This document shows, piece after piece, positions 8,825 through 37,553 of a DNA stretch of 64,000 nt; within the stretch, counting starts at the first letter, position 1; each line of letters begins with the position of its first letter. The position numbers and the translations under genes are program-made. The notes beneath the pieces were generated by a model. The model did not search any database. It worked only from the letters and a program-made list of their open reading frames with translations, and had not been told where the DNA came from. This DNA is from Vitrella brassicaformis CCMP3155. Its lineage: Eukaryota; Protista; Chromerida. The stretch is from the NCBI GenBank assembly GCA_001179505.1, contig CDMY01000299.1, positions 1 to 64,000 on the forward strand. Direction: 5' to 3'.

Positions 8825-10057
8825 ATGGTACAGACGCGCGCCGCTAGGCGTTCGCATGCCGAGGGCGGCGATGTTGAGATGGTCGATGCCCCCCTCCACT
8901 TCTGCGCAGACATCGACAGGCTCGAGAGGGTGCTCCGCGCTGAGAAGAAGCGGTTTTCGGCCATATTCAACTCGTTTGAGACCATCCTAGCAGGTACGCA
9001 GCGGCAGAAGCGGCTGACAAGACCTTTCCATTGTACTCTTCTATCTCTGTGTGCCAATTGCTGTGTGCAGGGCTAAAGGCGTGTGCTGGCGATGTGGAGG
9101 CGTTGAGTGAGGCGCTGGTGCTGCCGCCGTTGAGTCTCATGCAGAGCTTCAACGAAGTGGAGGTACGCCGGGGTGGGGGCTCTCACTCACACACACGACG
9201 CCCGAGTGGCTGTGTCTGCTGGGGCGTTCAGGGTCGTTTGACCACGGCGCGCAAGGCGCTGAACTATGGCAAGCTGGACATCGACCGCTACGAAGAGGTC
9301 ACCGACGCCCTCAGGGACGTCAACCACTTCATCACCACCATGGGCAAGGTATGTGCCGCTGTCACACACGCACACACACATGCACAATCTCCGTATGTGT
9401 GTGCATGTGTTTGTGTGTGTGTGTGTGTGTGTGTCAGAGCCTCAATGACGGCATGAATCGTTTGGCTGAGGTCCAGCAGCAGGCGAGCAGCAGCAGCGGC
9501 AGTAGCGGGGCGGTGGAACTGCGCACAAAGAGCTCGTGGGGTCAGGAGTCGCGTGTGCTGGCGCCGTCTGGCCCGAGTGGCCGGATGTCCGACGTGTGGG
9601 ACCGAGTGCTTCTACTGTCGGGTGAGCGACGTCCGCCACACCGAATGCGATCGATTCATCTCCGCTGGTGCTGTTTTCTCTACAGGGGGGAAGTCTCCCG
9701 GGAAGAACGTGAGGATACTCATGGATGGCGAAAGGGTGCTTCCGGATCGCCGGCTGGCCGATCTCATGCAAGAGGACGGGACCGTGTTGGTCGACATGGT
9801 GCCCGAGCAGAAGGGCGGCATGTTCCACGCCTCGTCCGGCCGGCATGGCTTCGGCACGTCATCCTTCATGCAGAAGCAGGCTGACGACATGAGGTATGCT
9901 TCCCCACAGCCAGTGAGTCAGTCGGTCACTCAGTGGCTGTGTGGCGTCTGTGTTCAGGTTGGAGATGGAGTCGCTGGAGGAGAGGCTGCGGATGCTCACG
10001 TCGGTGCACAAGGGCGGGCAGGAGTTGCTAGCCAGCACGCACCAGCAGCAGACCTAA
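8825..10057 (+). CDS. Coiled-coil protein with an internal ubiquitin/SUMO-like domain ending EQKGG, followed by an MFHASSGR tail
   Basis: Phase-consistent GT-AG exons. RILMDGERVLPDRRLADLMQEDGTVLVDMVPEQKGG resembles the C-terminal half of SUMO/ubiquitin folds. Confidence 0.72.
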
Positions 10058-24271: not shown

Positions 24272-27200
24272 ATGGCAGAGGAGCCTTCGTCGTTGATCTG
24301 GGCAGGCGCTGCTGTTTTCCTTCTGACGGCCGTCTCCATCAACCTCCTGCCTCACCTCTCACAGCAAGACGGTAAGGATCTCACCAACCAGAGGTGCAAG
24401 CAGGTCGACCGGGTGCTGATCTATGTTTCTGTGCAACAGGCGGCTCCCCCGACACCCATCCTCCCTCGAACGACACACGGCCTTCCCATCGCAGAACGGA
24501 TCTGGGCGTGGATCTGACAGGTCAGAGAAGACGGGAGCACACACACGCACACAGAGCACAGCACTTGGATGGCCAGGCAGCACGAGAGAGATGGCTGTCC
24601 ATCTTCCAATTCTGTTCATTGCGTGTTTGCAATATTAATTGGCGTCGTCTCCTGGCTGTTGGTGTCTGTGTGTGCTGCCGTCAGGTCTTCTGCGAGACTC
24701 AGTGCCGCGATGCAAGGTGTATCATGTGTTCGAGCCAGGCAGCAGCAGATGGATTGCCACGGCTGCCAACAGGGCTAGCGGCTGCTCCATGATGTGCCCA
24801 CTCCACTACCACTGCAATGTCAGTGACTTTGCTGGCCCGTTTGCGGATGGAAACGAGTGGCCCTACTATGCTGTGGATGACTGTCACTTCGCCGCTTCGC
24901 TGACATCTCTCCGATGCGGCGCATTCAGCCTCTTCCGGCCTCGATTCAGGTGAAAGGCCCGTCGATTGTGAGGGGCGTCTCGCCCATTGGTGGTGTTCTC
25001 TTGTGTTGGTCCGTGTCTGCCTGTCAGCCCTGATTGGAAGCAGCCGACCTACTGGAGTGCGGGCTCGTCCAGCTGGACCCCAAGGACAGATGTCGTCCCT
25101 GAGGTGTTTGCTGGCCATGCCTTGCTGCCAATCGACCCACAGCTGATCGACGTGGGTACTCTTTCTGGCTTGGTTGACACCTACGGCCGTCTTCTGGAGC
25201 TCATCCGAGACCACTCGGGCTCCTCTCGAGGCTTCCTCATCGGTGTCCCCTCTGCTTTTGTCGGGCTCTTCAACACCAACTCGGCTCTGCACCCTCTACA
25301 GACGGGCTTCAAGGCGACGTTCGCCCGCTTGTGGCAACAGGCGTACGGCGAGCCGCCTCCGAGGCAAGTAGATGATGTCCTGAAACGGCTGACCAAGGAG
25401 TGGCTTGCAGTGGCAAAAGACCTCTTCTTGTTGTACACCAAGGGCGGCATGAGCGACGTCAACAAAGCCCTCGTCCCAGCTGCCAAGCTGTCCTGGTGGA
25501 AGCAGCAGGCGTCCCAGCGGCACCGTCAGATCGCCCTGCTCTTCCGTCTGTTCTTTCGGTCGGACCTCACTCAGCTTGACCCGGTGCTCCCTCCCTGGCC
25601 AAAGCGCGTCGGCACCGCTCATCGCATCACGACCGCCTCGCGGGCTCTGATCGAGACCGCCTACCGGAAGGGCATGGCCGTCTCCTGGCCGGCATTCGCC
25701 TCCACCTCACTTTGCGAAGATGTTACGAGGGAATTTGATGGCGGCTTCGAAGAAGAGGAGACGACGGTCGGTTTCGAAGTCTTTCACGGGGTGGATTTCG
25801 AGTCAGGAGAGGGCGGCTTCACGTTCAACGTGCCGTGGGGGCTGGTGCACAAGAACGTCTTCTTCTCCATCCTCCTCCTCCGGTGTCACGAGCCGGAGAG
25901 TGCGTATACGTACGTGCCGCGACTGGTGCAGGGCGTCTCAACCTACGGAGAGGAGGAAGAGGTCCTCCTGCCGCCCCTCTTCCCCTTGACTGTCGTGCGT
26001 ATTGGGAAGGCGCCAGGTGATGCCGCCTGGTCCGTGTCTTTCTTTTGTTGACATTGATGGTTTGTGGCTGCAGGTGGAAAGTCAGGTTACACGTACGACA
26101 TCGGCCTGGGGACCAACTGCAGCGCAGCAACAAGCAGTGAGCAGAGAAGAGACGGATGAGATGGCAGTGGTTACCGATTTTTACTCTACTTTGTTTGTAT
26201 CCGTGTTTGTAGGTGTCTCTAAGCGTGTTGAGGTCAGACAAGCCCGTCAACGTGACCCATGCATCCCTCAGCGTCGAGCTGGCCGGCGGCGAGCTGCTGA
26301 GAATGATCGACCGCTTCGCTGCCGTCCCCGTACGCAACTCCACCGTGCTCACGACGGCAAGAGACCACCAGTCATCAGTCACAATACAGGTACGTCTGTC
26401 TGGTTGGCCGATGCATTGGTATCGGTGTGTTTCGTGTCTGTGTGTGTATCAGGTGTATGAGGGCGAGTATTCTAAGGGCAGCAACAACACGCTGGCTGGC
26501 GTGCTCGTGCTCTCAGACATCGAGCCGCAGCCGGCGGGGAGGCCGCAAATCACTGTAAGCGGGAAGGAGCGAAGAACTTACACCGGGAGAAGCGACCGCC
26601 ACACATGGTGTGACTGCATGTGCCCGTAGGTGTCGCTTGGCATCGACAGTGGTGGCACGCTGACGGTGTCTGCTGAAGAGATGGGCACGGTCAACCGGAG
26701 GGACATCATGATCGCCAGAGAGGATCACCCGATGGTCGTCAAGGTCGACACAAACGGCAAGAAGGCGCCTGTCGGCATCAGGAGCTGGCAGAGCTTCGGC
26801 AACATATTGGACACCTACCACACCAAAATGGGCCTCTCCCCAAGAACATACACGTGGGCACAATGAGGGAGGGATGGGTGACGTACCGACAGTCAGAGAG
26901 AGAGAGCCGAGGTCGCGTATCTATTCGTCCCGCCCTTCCTTCTGTGCTTGTTGTCAGATTCATGTTCAACGGCCGCCGCATTCGGAGACGCGACACTCCT
27001 TACCTGCTGGGTGTGAGGGACGGCGACATCATTGAAGCACGGCCATTCCAGGACACGCTGATCGGCCCAAGAAATCGCCTCTCATTGGCGACGACAACCG
27101 ACATCGGCCTGCGGTTGATAGGCGAGAAGGTGACGGTCGTTCCCAGAGGCACTTCCCTTCCAGCGACCAAGACCTACTTGACCATAACCTCAAGAGACGG

Positions 27201-28121
27201 CCAGACAGCAAGCCGTTTTGACGTGAGAGAGGTTTCCTGTGCGGGGCTCTTTGTTCGTATTCCTGTAAAGTGCGTGTGTTTTGTGCAGCCGTTCGAGGGC
27301 TACTACGATACGTACTACGACCGGCAACGGGAGAGGTTCACTCTCACAGGCCTCACACCGGCACCGAAGGGCACTACTCAAGTCGCGGTAGACAGACAGC
27401 TGCTGGGTCCATGGATGCATCCGTCCATTCACGTGTGTGCGTGGGGTGGCACCTTGTTTGTGCAATGCATGCAGGTGACATTCCAAATCGATCACAATGG
27501 TGCCATCACTGTGTCGGCTGAGGAGAAGGGGACGGATAACCGCGCCAACATCACCATGCCTAAGCTCGCCATGACAAAGCCCGCCCCCTTAAACCTCAAG
27601 GCCAGCGAAAGACACATAAAATGCACCAGTGAGACAGTCCCGTCGAGAGTTCGGATTGCTGCTGTGCAGGTTGTGTGCCAGGACGAGAGCAAGGAGCTCC
27701 ACCACACTGCAGAGTAATCGACATACATTGCGGCGCTCCTGGCACTTGCTGTGAGCCTGTCTGTCCGCAGAAAATGGACCAAGCGCATGAGTTATTTGAT
27801 ATATGCCTGGCAGAGGGAGTTTCGTTCAAATCCAAACACATACAGGTGCCAGTCGGACACACAGCCAGCCATCATCTGCCAGAGTTCCCTGTGTGTGACG
27901 TCTCACAGGTTTTTCTATCGCGGAGAGCCCGTGTATGGTGACGACACGACGGACAGCCTGGGCGTGATGGACGGAGACATCATCGAAGCCGTTCCTGAAG
28001 ACCGACCAATACGTAAGCACGGACAGGCAGACGCAGAGACGTGGATGAATGTTGTATTGATTTTGGTACAGTCCTTGCGGGTCGCTCATCCGCATGGCCG
28101 GCGATTGACAGATTGGGATAG
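24272..28121 (+). CDS. Multidomain protein: signal anchor - Cys-containing region - ADP-ribosyltransferase (R-S-ExE) - HSP70 SBD - SUMO-like - HSP70 SBD - SUMO-like
   Basis: ART: LYTKGG..VNKAL, AHRIT, WPAFASTSL, VSTYGEEEEVLLPP. SBD1: NVTHASLSVELAGG..TTARDHQSSVTIQVYEGE..PAGRPQITVSLGIDSGGTLTVSAEE. SLD1: FMFNGRRIRRRDTPYLLGVRDGDIIEA. SBD2: [30 protein letters not shown]. SLD2: FYRGEPVYGDDTTDSLGVMDGDIIEA. The frame is continuous through introns 25995-26073 and 26137-26212. Confidence 0.8.
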
Positions 28122-28586
28122 GATAGGACTGAACTGTACAGGTCGCAGGTGACAGGTAATAGGTGACATGTGATATCGGCAGCCGATAGGTAGCTAGGGA
28201 TGTGGCTTAGTAAATAGGTCGTGCATGCATTTATGCATTTGTCCTTTGCAGACGGTTTTTGTGTATGTACATACTTGTCTGTCTGTCCGTCTGTCTGTAT
28301 GTACGTATGTACGTATGTATGTAACTGTTGATGGATGGACGGATGAGCTGTGCGAAATGGAAAGAGGAGAACGGCGCGAAATGATCGACAGATGGCCGTG
28401 TGCGAGTCAAGACGCTCTGTTTGGCCGATGGAGACACTCACGAAAAGCAGTCGGGATACAGACAAGACAGACAGACAAGACAGACAAGACAGACAAGACA
28501 GACAAAGAGATTGAAGTCGGAACCCTAGCGGCCGTCTTCCGTTTTCTCTTGCGCAGCCTCGCCTCCCCCGAGAGTACCATGTGTAG

Positions 28587-28848
28587 TGGTCAATGTTGGC
28601 GATCCTAGCCCTGGCCGCACGGGCAACATTCTGGCAGAGACATTCGTGTATGCTGGGATCAGTGTAATTGCTCGAAGCGCTGTTGTGGCCCCTTTCATCA
28701 CTGCGTCCGAGAGGCTTAGAGCAACGCAGACATCTCCGCGGATGGAGACATCTCCGCGACTGGAGACATCTCTAGTACCGCGGGTACGCCTCCGCTCACA
28801 TCCTGCGCTGTACGCAAACCGCGGCTGCCTCTCGGTGTCAGCCACTAG
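28587..28848 (+). pseudogene. Orphan, frameshifted copy of the beta-repeat exon of the downstream fibre-like gene; contains an 18-nt tandem repeat at 28728-28780
   Basis: Phase-1 acceptor then VNVGDPSPGRTGNILAE.., like the exon LSVGDPDP..GRTGDIVAE. The DISADGDISATGDISS repeats are in a different frame. Confidence 0.5.
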
Positions 28849-28908
28849 CGGCCCTGAATTTACGAGGGTCGCTATATTTACGACGCGTTAACGGTCGCGT
28901 ACAGCACT

Positions 28909-29782
28909 TTGCCTGCCGAGCATCCTCTGTCAGCGGTCACTCTCCGCCTTTCGCTCGTCATCGCTGTGTGTTTCGCCCTCTACGCCCTACCCCGGGCTGA
29001 CGGCCAAGAATGCTCCAAAGCAACATGTAGGTGTACGCAGGCCACACACGGCACAGACAATCACCCAGACGACTTATTCGCCCTCGCGTGTGTGTGCTGT
29101 TCGTGCAGGCTTGATAGCTGGCAACCCGATTCAAGGGGTTGGTACAGGTGGGATAGCAGCTGAACGGCTAATCATTGCCGAAGGGGGTCTCTTGTTGGGG
29201 GGTGAGTGGGACCGCGAAGCCGACTTGCTTGTTGGTCATGGCAGGGCGCGGGTCCCCCGTGGGGAAGTTATTGCCAGAAGTAAGCAGCAAGGAGCGGCAG
29301 GTCCTTTTTCGTCACTGTGCTGCTGCCTTCATGCAGGCTTGATTGCTGGCGACACGTCTGGCGACACAGCGGCGAGTGTTGATCCCGGTGACGTGGCAGC
29401 TAGCAACAACGTTATTGTTCTTGGCGACGAAGTGCGGGCCACCCGTGCGGAAGTCAAAGCCAGAAGTAAGCAGCATGTTGCAGCAGGTCCTGTCGCCCGC
29501 TTCACTCTGCGTGTGCGCGTGTGTCGGTTTGTGTGTGTTTCCAGGCATGACCGTCGGTAGCCCTGACCGTAGAATCTTCGGGTCCGTTGCTGGCTTCGAT
29601 GGCAACATCGTGGCACAGAACTCCATAATTGCGAACAGGGTTCAGGCCCAACGGGATTTGCAAGTTGGTAATTCTCTATTTGGTAACTCTGTGTTTATTG
29701 ATGGTGACTCGGTGCGGGCCGAAAGTGCGGAAGTGAGAGCCAGAAGTAAGCAACGAAGAGCGGCAGGTCCTGTCGTCACTGC

Positions 29783-29818
<36 letters not shown>

Positions 29819-30585
29819 TGTGTGCGTGTGTCTTCCAGGCCTGTCTGTCGGCGATCCTGACCCTTTGCGCTTTACTACTGGCCGCACTGGCGACATCGTG
29901 GCAGAGAAAGGCGTGTTCGCCGATTGGATCCAGTCTTCGAATAGTCTTGCAGAGGGAGATATCACTGCATTCCGGACCGTTAGAGGAGTCCAAGGGTGCA
30001 GATGCGGCGGGCTGACCATTCCGGGGGACGTTGTTGAAGTGAGCGAAACCGACGACCAGCCGCCGTCATCCTTCGAAGAGTGGGGCGGGAGGAACCGATC
30101 AGCGGCGTACGAGGCGAGGCCTTCAGGCAGCTGCCTGTCCACACCAACCCACACAACAGGCTGACGCTGGCCGCCCAGGACGTCAGCCGCCTCTTCCCAT
30201 CGGCAGTGGGGACATTCGAAGACAATTATCAGCCGGAGGAGGGCGGCAAGGGGCGGCCGACGAAGCACACGACGATTGACCTGACCCAGCTGATCTTCAC
30301 GCAGATGTCCGTCATCCAAGACCTCCAAGCCCATGCCTCTGACCTCCAGGCCCGTGCGTCTGTCATCCCTGACCTCCAGGCCCGCATCGCCCGTCTGAAG
30401 AATGCGCTTGCCACACTCCCAGGTATCACGGCCATCATGCAGGACGCGCACGATAGCCAAACGAGCTCACGTGTGTGTCTGTCTGTGTCTCTGTGTGGCT
30501 TGTTGGTGTAGGCCAAGGCGGCAAGAGGGGCAAGGGCGCCGGTGGTCCACCCTCAGTTGTCGGCGGGAAGGGCGGCAAGAAGTGA
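28909..30585 (+). CDS. Secreted tail-fibre-like protein: signal peptide, degenerate Gly/Val/Ile beta-repeats, C-terminal peptidase-S74/intramolecular-chaperone-like domain with coiled coil
   Basis: Signal LSLVIAVCFALYALPRADG/QEC. Exons 29109-29279, 29337-29465, 29545-29745, 29839-~30106, 30160-30422, 30511-30585. LAAQDVSRLFPSAV..TIDLTQLIFTQMSVIQDLQA..LQARIARLKN resembles the S74 C-half. No in-frame ATG found, so the start is uncertain. Confidence 0.68.
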
Positions 30586-32032
30586 GATGTCTATCTGTGT
30601 GTGTGAGTGAGTGATGAGTGTCTCGGTGTCTCCTCGAGTACGTATATCTTGCCGTGTGAGCAAGTGCGCACTTGTATGGTATGGATCCTGTGGTGCGACA
30701 GGAACGTTCCTCTGCCCTGACTGACTGGAGAGAGGCGAATTAATGGAGAGGGCGGCCTGGCCTGGCGGGGTGCTCATCGGGAGTCTGTGTCTGTGACTGA
30801 TGCGTGTGCGTCGCCGTTGTTTATTTGTCCGTATGCGTGCGTTATTTGTCCGTCTCCGACACACATGCAAAGGATGCAGCTGTAGTGTGTGCACATGCGG
30901 ACAAAAAATAGCAACACGTTCTCACGTGCATCGGACTTCATTTGTGATTTTATTAGTGTGTTGTATGGTATGGCCTGGACCGTGTGGTGACGCTTTTCTT
31001 CGCTCTCACTTGAGAGAGAGGCGAGTCAGTGGAGGGGGGCCTGGCCTGCTGAGGGGCTCATATTATTTTATTTTGTTTTATTTTCGCCAATCCGATTAGA
31101 CTTTTCGTGTTTGTACAACGAACTGCCCCATCGGTCAACTGGTTGAGTGCGTGCCGTGTGCAAGTGTGACGGTCTCTCGTTCAATCCATCCCCCGTCTCC
31201 CTTGTACAGAATACACACACACACACACACACAGAGACACAGACACAGACACAGACAGAGAGACAGAGAGAGAGACATGTATCCACCTCACGTTGGGTGT
31301 CGCAGCGGCGTGGATGAAGAGGCAGTGGGGCAGCAAAGTGCAAGAGACAGTGGAAGGGTAGGCGTGGGGTCGGGGCTTCATGCTCACATACTGCTGCTGT
31401 CGCTGCTGGCTGTTTCTCTCTCAGCATGTTTGCGTCGTGTTGTGGCGAAGGCATGACACCCACACGAGGAGGGATTGACCTCGTCTCTCCCCTGCTGAGT
31501 GCCATGCTGCCGCCTGACGTATCACAACCGCCGCAAGACACATTGCTTTGCGCTGTGCATCGCTTCTCAACCGTTGGGGCGGGTGTGAGAGTCAGTGTCT
31601 CGATGAACTCGGTCGTTTGGTGATGGCGTCAGGAGGGGGCTGCTTGTGTACAGTGAGAGCCGGGCCAAATTGGTGGGTGTCTCTGTATGTGTCAAGCTGT
31701 TCATCTGTACGTGAGCCAGTCGGACACTCCAGTGACAGGCTTGCTATCTGCACCGAGTTGTGCGATGACGTCCGCCCACCCACACATCCACTCACAGACG
31801 TGGTTGTCCCCACACACAGACATGGTTGTCCATCTGTCGGTGTGGCTGGGAGGGTCTTTCCGGCTCACACTGCCTCAGTCAACGTGTCTGCGGGCTGACT
31901 GGCTGGTCAGCACGAGGAACCATCAACTCATGCAGAATGAAGCGGGAAGACGCCACTCGAAGAAGATCAGTCACAATATGACGTTTGCCACCTCAGTCAG
32001 TGACGGCACTCAACTGAGCCCTCAGCCTCTCA

Positions 32033-34668: not shown

Positions 34669-35664
34669 ATGGCGGATACCGACCTTCCCGCTGATCAGAG
34701 TCCGAGCGGTCCTCCCGCTGATCTCATGGTGACGGTGACGTACCAGAAGGAGTCCTTTCGCGTGCCTGTTGACCCCAATGGTGCGTGCGACCAGCTGTTC
34801 CAAATCATGGCAATGGCCCAATGGTGCGTGGTGGGTGTGCTTCATGAGAAGCAGCATGCGGATTTCACCCTCCATGGCATTAAGCCCGCACCCAAGGGCG
34901 TCGCTAACGTCACGGTATCCACCATAAATCCACGTTTCAGGGGGTGTCAGCGGCGTTCGTGTGTGTGTTTGTGTGTGGCTGTGTGTGTGTAGGTGACGTT
35001 CTCAATCGACGGGAGCGCCATCGTCACCGTCTCGGCCGAGGACAGGGGCACGGGCAACCGCGAGAGCGTCAGAATGCCATCTCCCGTCGGCACAGAACCC
35101 GCCGTCCATGTCACAGTCAGCCGAACACACACAGAGATCTGCACACACGGATGGGCATACAAGCAACAAACGAATGGCTCACTGGCTGGCTGTGCGTGCA
35201 GGTGATATGGCAGGCTGAAAAGAAGCAGATCTCTTGGCACATAGCATCACGGTGGGAGAGGGAGGCCCGACACGCACGTCTTAAAATGGCATGGAGGACG
35301 TTTCTCGCGTGTGTGTGTGCGTCTGTGTGTGGCGCTGCGTATGCAGGAGTGAGTGGCTGACGCGAGCATGGCACAAGGATTTTGGCGCGGAGCCAAACAC
35401 ATACAGGTATGAAAGTGACAGGCCACCATGCACTCAGAGACCATTGGCCGTTGACAGGTTCTACTACCGTGGTGAGCCCGTGTATGACGACGACACGGCG
35501 AGCAGCCTCGGCATAGAGGATGGCGACGTCATCGAGGCCACACGGGAAGACCGACCCACAGGTGCGCATGGACAGAAAGATAAACAGATGGATGCATTGC
35601 TCGGACTGCTCTTTTCTCCTCTCGTCTGTTCTTTTTGTTTTTGCCTGCAGTGCATCGCCCTTAG
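34669..35664 (+). CDS. Stand-alone paralog of the HSP70-SBD(C-half) + SUMO-like module, with a UBL-like N-terminal fragment
   Basis: HADFTLHGIKPAPKGVANVT|VTFSIDGSAIVTVSAEDRGTGNRE and PNTYR|FYYRGEPVYDDDTASSLGIEDGDVIEA. Intron positions are the same as in the 24-28 kb gene. Confidence 0.72.
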
Positions 35665-36457: not shown

Positions 36458-37515
36458 ATGGCGCAGAACGGGCTGCATGGCCAGCCAAATGCGTCGCGGC
36501 CCTTCGGCAAGATGCCGACCATCTGCTTCGTCGACATGCCTGGTCTGGTGACGATGGTGGAGCTCTTCCACGGCAAGGACAAGAAGATCTTTCCCTTCTC
36601 ATTCCCCGGCCTGCAAATACTCCAGACCAAAGGCAACATCTGGTGCGAAACGCCAAACACACACAACGGAGTACATTGCTTGGCTCATGTCCGTGTTTGT
36701 TGTGTGTGTTGTGCAGCATGCCTGTGTTGAAGGGCACCACTGGGGCTGCTGATGAGCGTCGCGTGCAGCTGTGCCTCGTGTCATGCGTCAGAGAGGTCAG
36801 CTGATTAAAGATACACAGTTTGTTGTCAGGAGGGAGGTATGCGCTGTGTGCTGCCTCCTGCAGGATTTGGACCAGCTGGTCCGCGAGAAGCCCATGATGC
36901 GAACCAAACTGGAGGAATTCGATGTAACGCACACACACCACACACAACCACCCTCACACCCACCCTTCTCGTGTGTGTCAGTGTGCGACTTTGCCCAAGG
37001 CCGTGGAGAGCTCCCGTATGTTTCAGATGGAGACCATATCTGTGCGGCACAGGCGGCCGGAGGAGGTCCAGCCCGACCTCGTCACACTCACTAAGGACGA
37101 ATTCGACCTGGTGAGTAAACAGAGAGGTCGACGCATGACACACAGGGAGGAGGGCGAGGCCAGGTGTTTGAGTGTGCGGCTTCGATGTGTTTGTGTGTGT
37201 GTGTGTATCATCAGACTCAGAGTGACGCGTATCGGCTGCCGCTGGGCACTGTCACGCTCGTCGATTTCGTCATGCTCCTGTACGTAGCTAACAGAAGACA
37301 TACACGCGAGCATAATCATGATGGGCGTTTGGTGTGTTCGCCTTTTGTGTGTGTGCAGGCTCCAGCGTTATCAGCAGCAGGCCAGCCTGTCGATCACATC
37401 ACACGACTGGTTCGACACACGGGGCAGCGAAAGCCTCTTCTGCCTCCTGCTCACAGGTCACTGCACCCACACACCATCCACAGCTGCTTTCCCGGCCTTA
37501 TTCTCGTGATGCATT

Positions 37516-37553
<38 letters not shown>

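Follow-up and report, generated by a model that had tools for sequence, protein, structure and literature searches.

Vitrella brassicaformis CCMP3155 is a chromerid alga (Alveolata, Colpodellida), free-living or coral-associated, and the chromerids are photosynthetic relatives of the apicomplexans. The stretch of its genome analyzed here, referred to below as the window, comprises positions 1 to 64,000 of contig CDMY01000299.1 (assembly GCA_001179505.1), and the gene in question occupies positions 24272-28121 on the + strand, where its domains and the neighboring genes of the window described below also lie. These bounds, proposed from the DNA alone in an initial annotation, are the same as those of the public gene CEM00783.1 (UniProt A0A0G4ERA1; CDMY01000299.1:24272-28121), the product of which is a 901-aa protein (model P0004) named "Rad60/SUMO-like domain-containing protein." The public entry is an automatic, unstudied annotation that carries no ADP-ribosyltransferase (ART) call, and the architecture is thus already present in public databases. 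The initial annotation had proposed a single open spliced frame in which an ART is fused to two modules, each pairing an Hsp70 substrate-binding domain (SBD) with a SUMO-like domain (SLD). We lean toward a modified reading, in which the gene is one of three paralogues, known so far only from V. brassicaformis, that would share a plan of an ART-like part followed by an SBD/SLD part, the frames of the two parts being decoupled in this copy.

Transcript evidence for the gene consists of two open reading frames (ORFs) of a single MMETSP transcript, Transcript_5075, namely P0001 (560 aa) and P0005 (391 aa), together with the JGI transcript contig L003 (2447 nt). In the transcripts the gene is divided into 15 exons: 24272-24371, 24440-24520, 24685-24949, 25028-26016, and 26074-26136, which belong to the ART part; 26213-26389, 26453-26554, 26630-26853, 26958-27222, and 27289-27387; and 27475-27600, 27670-27713, 27771-27845, 27909-28012, and 28072-28121. 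A 3' untranslated region follows at 28122-28501, a minimum extent set by the reach of L003. A (AGACAGACA)n microsatellite is found at 28460-28505 in this untranslated region.

The Hsp70 SBD-beta and SUMO-like content of the downstream part is confirmed, with matches far beyond chance. Pfam searches were run on single exons and on the public spliced ORFs and models (P0004 and P0005). Taken exon by exon, the HSP70 family is matched at E = 5.3e-10 (26213-26626) and 1.5e-5 (26854-27714), and on the spliced sequences the values fall to 7.6e-33 for P0005 and 6e-36 for P0004, with two matching stretches in each. Copy 1 of the SBD-beta spans 26213-26728 over three exons, and the more divergent copy 2 lies at 27091-27567; both match the SBDs of BiP, Ssa1, mitochondrial Hsp70, and DnaK in the PDB at 1e-16 to 1e-12. 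Coverage of the HSP70 profile is confined to about positions 389-500 of 599, which corresponds to SBD-beta only. Positions 1-388, representing the nucleotide-binding (ATPase) domain (NBD), have no match in any exon or in P0004, so that the claim of two SBD copies lacking an ATPase domain is borne out. The helical lid and C-terminal tail of Hsp70 are likewise absent, since the alignments end at profile position 500 and a SUMO-like domain begins a few residues past the last SBD-beta strand, where the lid would begin.

SUMO-like domains of the Rad60-SLD type do follow each SBD, as had been proposed. Domain 1 spans 26738-27042, and domain 2 is spread over four exons at 27595-28094. Single exons remain below threshold (E = 5.4e-4 and 0.062); on P0005, the Rad60-SLD family PF11976 is matched in two stretches at 49.9 bits (2.8e-13) against a cut-off of 23.8 bits, and the ubiquitin family at only 27.6 bits. 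Neither domain ends in a di-Gly, the sole GG of P0005 being located inside the first SBD and the protein ending in ..RLG at 28118. The SUMO-like domains are internal and lack a di-Gly, and therefore are not conjugatable. The intron at 27601-27669 is of the GC-AG type, with the donor GCCAGC, and is backed by both transcript assemblies; two further GC donors occur in the paralogue model. A stretch of the second SUMO-like domain (27758-28007) is 97% identical at the DNA level to 9538-9786 of a paralogous locus on a different contig (L001, described below), compared with 77% for the neighboring matched stretch, which suggests recent gene conversion between the paralogues.

These modules set the gene apart from the proteins whose domains it shares. 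Both SBD copies align with Hsp70s (BiP/GRP78, Ssa1, mitochondrial Hsp70, and DnaK) over the whole SBD-beta sandwich; however, the NBD, the interdomain linker, and the helical lid are missing, a SUMO-like domain begins where the latter normally would, and the SBD-beta is duplicated here and triplicated in the paralogue P0003. Because the NBD and lid are absent, the gene is no Hsp70 proper, and nor does it encode a Rad60-type protein. With the family of Rad60, Esc2, and NIP45 (PF11976) it shares a profile match above the gathering score and internal SUMO-like domains devoid of di-Gly, but in the Vitrella gene these domains are interleaved with Hsp70 SBDs, rather than forming a C-terminal tandem pair, and no further Rad60-like region was found. 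Rad60 family members are nuclear genome-stability factors, whereas the Vitrella protein is probably not nuclear.

The upstream part of the gene contains the ART-like region. The ORF at 24987-26051 (+) carries, in the right order, all three motifs on which the ART assignment was originally based: AHRIT (25617-25631), FASTSL (25695-25712), and YGEEEEVLLPP (25944-25976). The ART-like core, defined by these motifs and by weak profile matches, extends over 25560-26136, its last part being encoded by a 63-nt mini-exon (26074-26136) that follows the intron 26017-26073. The arginine on the first core strand (R348 in P0001 numbering) is the same in all three paralogues and aligns, at the level of the motif, with the arginine strand of the Vis toxin of Vibrio splendidus. 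The S-T-S motif (S374/T375) lies in a sequence F-A-S-T-S/T that is invariant in all three save for its last residue and also aligns with the STS of Vis, while the E-x-E of the window is also kept by P0002 and by the DNA of L001. The paralogues are about 50% identical overall, and the R, S-T, and ExE positions do not vary among them. Among 24,736 Pfam models, the top match of each paralogue is the ART family PF01129, with E values of 0.019-0.08 for the window (0.081 when taken exon by exon), 0.065 for P0002, and 0.0025 for the L001 ORF, and always over the same profile stretch (177-208 of 222). A second ART family, PF03496, matches the stretch that includes the ExE as well (E = 0.2). Vis (4xzj) is the only ART in the PDB to be matched, at E = 0.13 for the core and 0.13-0.9 overall, through two collinear stretches containing R plus STS and then ExE.

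It is possible, though in our judgment unlikely, that this region is a lineage-specific domain unrelated to ADP-ribosyltransferases, in which R, S-T-S, and E-x-E fell into the right order by chance. Several results point that way and weigh against the reading we favor. The curated threshold for an ART was never reached: the best PF01129 scores are 14.7 bits for the window and 17.6 bits for the L001 ORF against a cut-off of 22.3, and PF03496 scores 11.4 bits against 23.4. No ART was found in the PDB by a profile of the ART paralogues or by P0002 alone, and no ART match to the region was obtained from NCBIfam, PHROGs, or PADLOC. The spacing from STS to ExE is some 40 residues longer than in Vis, and two AlphaFold2 runs, each on an alignment of 3-4 sequences, were uninformative, with predicted local distance difference test (pLDDT) scores of 33.2 for P0001 with its two paralogues and 36.6 for the cropped region 25341-26015; the low-scoring models show a succession of strands and helices that is compatible with an ART and is not counted as evidence. 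A chance arrangement, however, has to contend with an ART family heading the Pfam matches of all three paralogues over one profile stretch, with the agreement of a second ART family on that stretch, with the alignment of a separate region to the R and STS of Vis in the correct order, and with three invariant motif positions in proteins that differ at about half of their residues. The motifs claimed at the outset have stood, and are now seen to be invariant in three paralogues, while all profile matches to ART families fall below threshold. We regard homology of the region to ADP-ribosyltransferases as likely, although membership of a family is not demonstrated, and it probably represents a new and very divergent ART clade undetected by Pfam.

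Compared with the R-S-E class of ARTs (cholera-toxin-like enzymes and ARTCs, including the ecto-ARTs of PF01129, the exoenzymes of PF03496, and Vis), the Vitrella gene has the same order and identity of arginine strand, S-T-S, and E-x-E, a hydrophobic strand after the E-x-E, and a beta-rich core preceded by a helical region. It differs in lacking a significant sequence match, in having an insert of some 40 residues after the STS and before the ExE, and in its Cys-rich N-terminal region, hydrophobic N-terminus, and adjacent SBD/SLD modules.

The proposal that ART and SBD share one open spliced frame is contradicted by the transcripts, which place them on one mature mRNA as two overlapping ORFs in different frames. 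The junctions 26016|26074 and 26136|26213 are used both by the MMETSP ORFs, as established by exact mapping, and by L003, as established by alignment to the window. ORF1 of the mature mRNA (P0001; 24272-26460, stop at 26458-26460) encodes the N-terminal hydrophobic segment, Cys-rich region, helical region, and ART-like core, and then runs into the first SBD exon in the other frame, adding a 59-aa out-of-frame tail. The SBD frame is shifted by +1 from the ART frame and is open from upstream of exon 26213-26389; its first Met is at 26303, from which P0005 (SBD-SLD-SBD-SLD) begins, and the SBD/SLD ORF is at least 391 aa long. L003, which is 99-100% identical to the window piecewise, shows the same arrangement in overlapping genes at 3-929 and 877-1785 that are in different frames. 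L003 also retains the 57-nt intron 27714-27770, so that its SBD/SLD ORF ends early (P0006, 302 aa), whereas Transcript_5075 splices this intron out; L003 therefore represents an isoform or assembly distinct from Transcript_5075.

Of the two introns on which the proposed fusion depended, 25995-26073 is not used, as the transcripts splice 26016|26074, and the donor at 25995 can be dismissed as one that happens to offset the frame difference. The other, 26137-26212, is used by both assemblies but is not phase 0 in the ART frame. The initial annotation had named transcripts that end between ART and SBD as the outcome that would count against a fusion; this was encountered in a modified form, in that the transcript continues and it is the ART ORF that stops. 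Frames were assigned from the junctions in the transcripts and from P0002, whose ORF has transcript support; when codon substitutions in the mini-exon were compared among the three loci, the test did not tell the frames apart, with only 46 nt aligning.

The public model fuses ART and SBD by a different route, through a downstream acceptor (intron 26137-26237) that is used by neither transcript. In principle, the 901-aa protein could be real, or be one of the real products, since this 3' splice site within the first SBD exon keeps the frame and its choice could switch between ART-only and ART-SBD-SLD forms. When P0004 is placed on the genome, its introns are GT-AG and normal in length (57-164 nt), nothing interrupts the SBD/SLD frame over its 10 exons, the part of this frame upstream of the first Met resembles the paralogue, and the splice motifs of the gene are too loose to exclude an alternative acceptor. 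That acceptor appears in neither assembly, however, and the 901-aa product is encoded by no transcript contig. The first intron of P0004 also disagrees with the transcript (24394-24494 in the public model and 24372-24439 in the transcript, the proteins differing around residues 34-60), which indicates that the model was not closely RNA-guided, and gene predictors favor introns that preserve frame. We consider a genuine fused product rather doubtful on this evidence, and CEM00783.1 is a concrete case of a public gene model whose fused product is contradicted by the available transcript assemblies.

Some features of the transcript record also speak against decoupling. The two assemblies may share raw reads and show dominant isoforms only, so that a minor in-frame isoform may be compatible with both, and a run of about 1.3 kb of SBD/SLD coding sequence without further defects is also what continued translation would lead one to expect. 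The single frameshift-type discrepancy between the ART and SBD/SLD parts is the only defect observed. As the SBD-SLD-SBD-SLD frame is fully open across 10 exons, the decoupling would therefore be recent, or else bypassed in a minor isoform. Compared with its counterpart in the paralogue at L001, the first SBD exon has a length that is offset by a number of bases other than a multiple of three.

Two other ways around the frame discrepancy appear highly improbable, namely that it is bypassed by programmed +1 ribosomal recoding or that it is an artefact of assembly. The +1 relationship of the SBD frame to the ART frame, together with the openness of the second ORF, would suit recoding, but a shift at the stop of ORF1 would leave half of the first SBD misread, and no known signal was seen, none having been searched for. 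Assembly error was rejected as the source of the offset, as the genomic sequence of the exon concerned agrees fully with both transcript assemblies (100% identity across it in the case of L003).

The family so far comprises three paralogous loci, all in V. brassicaformis CCMP3155. P0002 (CEM00811; locus L002) is encoded further along the same contig, CDMY01000299.1, and an MMETSP ORF matches it exactly. P0002 is an ART-only protein that stops a few bases past the equivalent of the mini-exon, with no SBD downstream. P0002 begins in the middle of the Cys-rich region, and directly upstream of it (L002 6940-8050) is an annotated gene of 224 aa that supplies a ubiquitin-like domain along with the first half of this region; both annotated genes may be a single gene of ubiquitin-like (Ubl), Cys-rich, and ART parts, or a decayed one. 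P0003 (CEM09671; contig CDMY01000395.1, locus L001) is known as a gene model only, in which an ART-like part is followed by SBD, SLD, SBD, SLD, and SBD. In this model an internal donor removes the ExE strand and thereby fuses the parts in frame, although the DNA still encodes the strand in an open frame. If L001 were spliced at sites homologous to those of the window, its full ART ORF would, by our reading, be out of frame with the mini-exon. A metagenome scan with a 32-nt pattern gave 0 matches to an L001 transcript, and at none of the three loci is there a transcript in which an SBD shares its frame with an intact R-S-ExE domain. ART-like and ubiquitin-fold domains nevertheless adjoin in three of three loci, and the order from ART to SBD/SLD is found on one transcription unit in two, which argues for an ancestral functional link between them.

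Relatives of the ART part were sought outside Vitrella by an exhaustive phmmer search over 1.84 billion representative proteins, which returned three proteins only, all from Vitrella. Profile searches with the ART part and searches with the SLD-SBD-SLD region similarly returned only Vitrella proteins, and among the 8000 candidates sharing most words with P0005 the matches were ordinary Hsp70s only, at 23-31% coverage. No paper was found on Vitrella and ARTs, or on an Hsp70 SBD combined with a SUMO-like domain. The earlier statement that no protein of this architecture had been described thus holds outside Vitrella, with the qualification that the architecture was already public under CEM00783.1 and A0A0G4ERA1. 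It is an unusual, lineage-specific architecture in which known domains occur in a new arrangement.

Traces of related sequence are found elsewhere in the window. A small gene at 34669-35600 encodes, at its N-terminus, a ubiquitin-like stretch that hardly differs from the beginning of the 224-aa gene of L002. An SBD-beta, represented by its C-terminal half, comes next, and then a SUMO-like domain that is 48% identical to the second SUMO-like domain of the main gene; the Pfam matches of the small gene are weak (HSP70 0.08-0.14, Rad60-SLD 0.003). A segment of about 1 kb at 36461-37431 is 83% identical to L002 11655-12630, a segmental duplication that accompanies the ART paralogues. The next annotated gene downstream, at 28742-30200 (+), encodes 417 aa, and its ORF translations show internal repeats with a recurring '..RSKQ..AAGP..'; the product has no record and is truncated by the end of the locus. 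Further microsatellites are located at 29787-29831 ((TG)22), 31213-31277 ((ACACAG)n), and 37516-37553 ((TC)19).

The N-terminal region offers some indication of where the protein may act. Hydrophobicity peaks at 24293-24349, where the 19-residue Kyte-Doolittle mean reaches 2.1, higher than anywhere else in the protein; this segment is conserved in P0003 and may serve as a signal anchor or signal peptide. The Cys-rich region exon (24685-24949) has no Pfam match, and its cysteines are conserved in P0003. Together with six N-x-S/T sequons, the hydrophobic N-terminus and conserved cysteines suggest a membrane or secretory-pathway protein. Such a location makes recruitment of SUMO-pathway partners, which the initial annotation had attributed to the SUMO-like domains, doubtful. 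No feature of the gene points to a toxin acting on people, animals, or crops.

Within the reading we favor, that of an ART-like and SBD/SLD plan with decoupled frames, the ancestral protein would have begun with a hydrophobic N-terminal anchor and a Cys-rich region, continued through a helical region into a mono-ADP-ribosyltransferase-like domain of the R-S-ExE (arginine) type, and ended in repeats of SBD-beta plus SUMO-like domain. The main predicted product of the present copy would be the 560-aa ART-like protein with its short out-of-frame tail, resembling the ART-only P0002, and decoupling from the SBD/SLD part could be recent or could be bypassed in a minor isoform. The activity would presumably be that of an arginine-specific mono-ART of the membrane or secretory pathway. 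In a fused form, the tandem SBD-beta units might hold extended hydrophobic segments of client proteins and so bring clients to the transferase, the SUMO-like domain occupying the place where the helical lid of Hsp70 normally begins; alternatively, the SBDs might themselves be targets in cis, much as ARTC1 targets BiP. Localization and client binding are both inferred, which is a further point on the opposing side.

Ubiquilins and BAG6 are quality-control factors that combine a UBL with a holdase, and the SidE family comprises ARTs that act on ubiquitin. The former resemble the Vitrella gene in joining a ubiquitin fold to a binding module for exposed hydrophobic segments, and the latter in the association of an ART with ubiquitin-like domains, seen in all three Vitrella loci; there is, however, no sequence relationship to any of them, and the binding module is Sti1-like or BAG rather than an Hsp70 SBD. 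A bolder view is that a lid-less SBD-beta joined to a SUMO-like domain constitutes a new client-binding module, in which a ubiquitin fold replaces the lid and which would be coupled to the ART by choice of 3' splice site or by recoding, giving either a free ART or a tethered client trap, with the proximity of ART and Ubl reflecting ADP-ribosylation of clients or of the Ubl/SBD. We hold this to be distinctly unlikely. The closest functional precedent would seem to be the action of ARTC1 on GRP78/BiP in the endoplasmic reticulum (Fabrizio et al., 2015, as reviewed in PMC8003356). There, too, an ART of the R-S-E type has a functional partner from the Hsp70 family within the secretory pathway, but the mammalian enzyme and its full-length chaperone are separate proteins, whereas in Vitrella the two are neighbors in one gene, and only the SBD-beta of the chaperone is present.

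As things stand, the locus provides a lineage-specific domain architecture in a chromerid, a probable divergent clade of ARTs, and a gene model contradicted by transcripts. Were both the ART call and a fused isoform to prove true, the Vitrella protein would be the first instance of an Hsp70 substrate-binding domain serving as the targeting or adaptor module of a protein-modifying enzyme and the first in which a ubiquitin fold is found where Hsp70 carries its lid, and it would represent a natural cis version of the debated relationship between ARTs and BiP.

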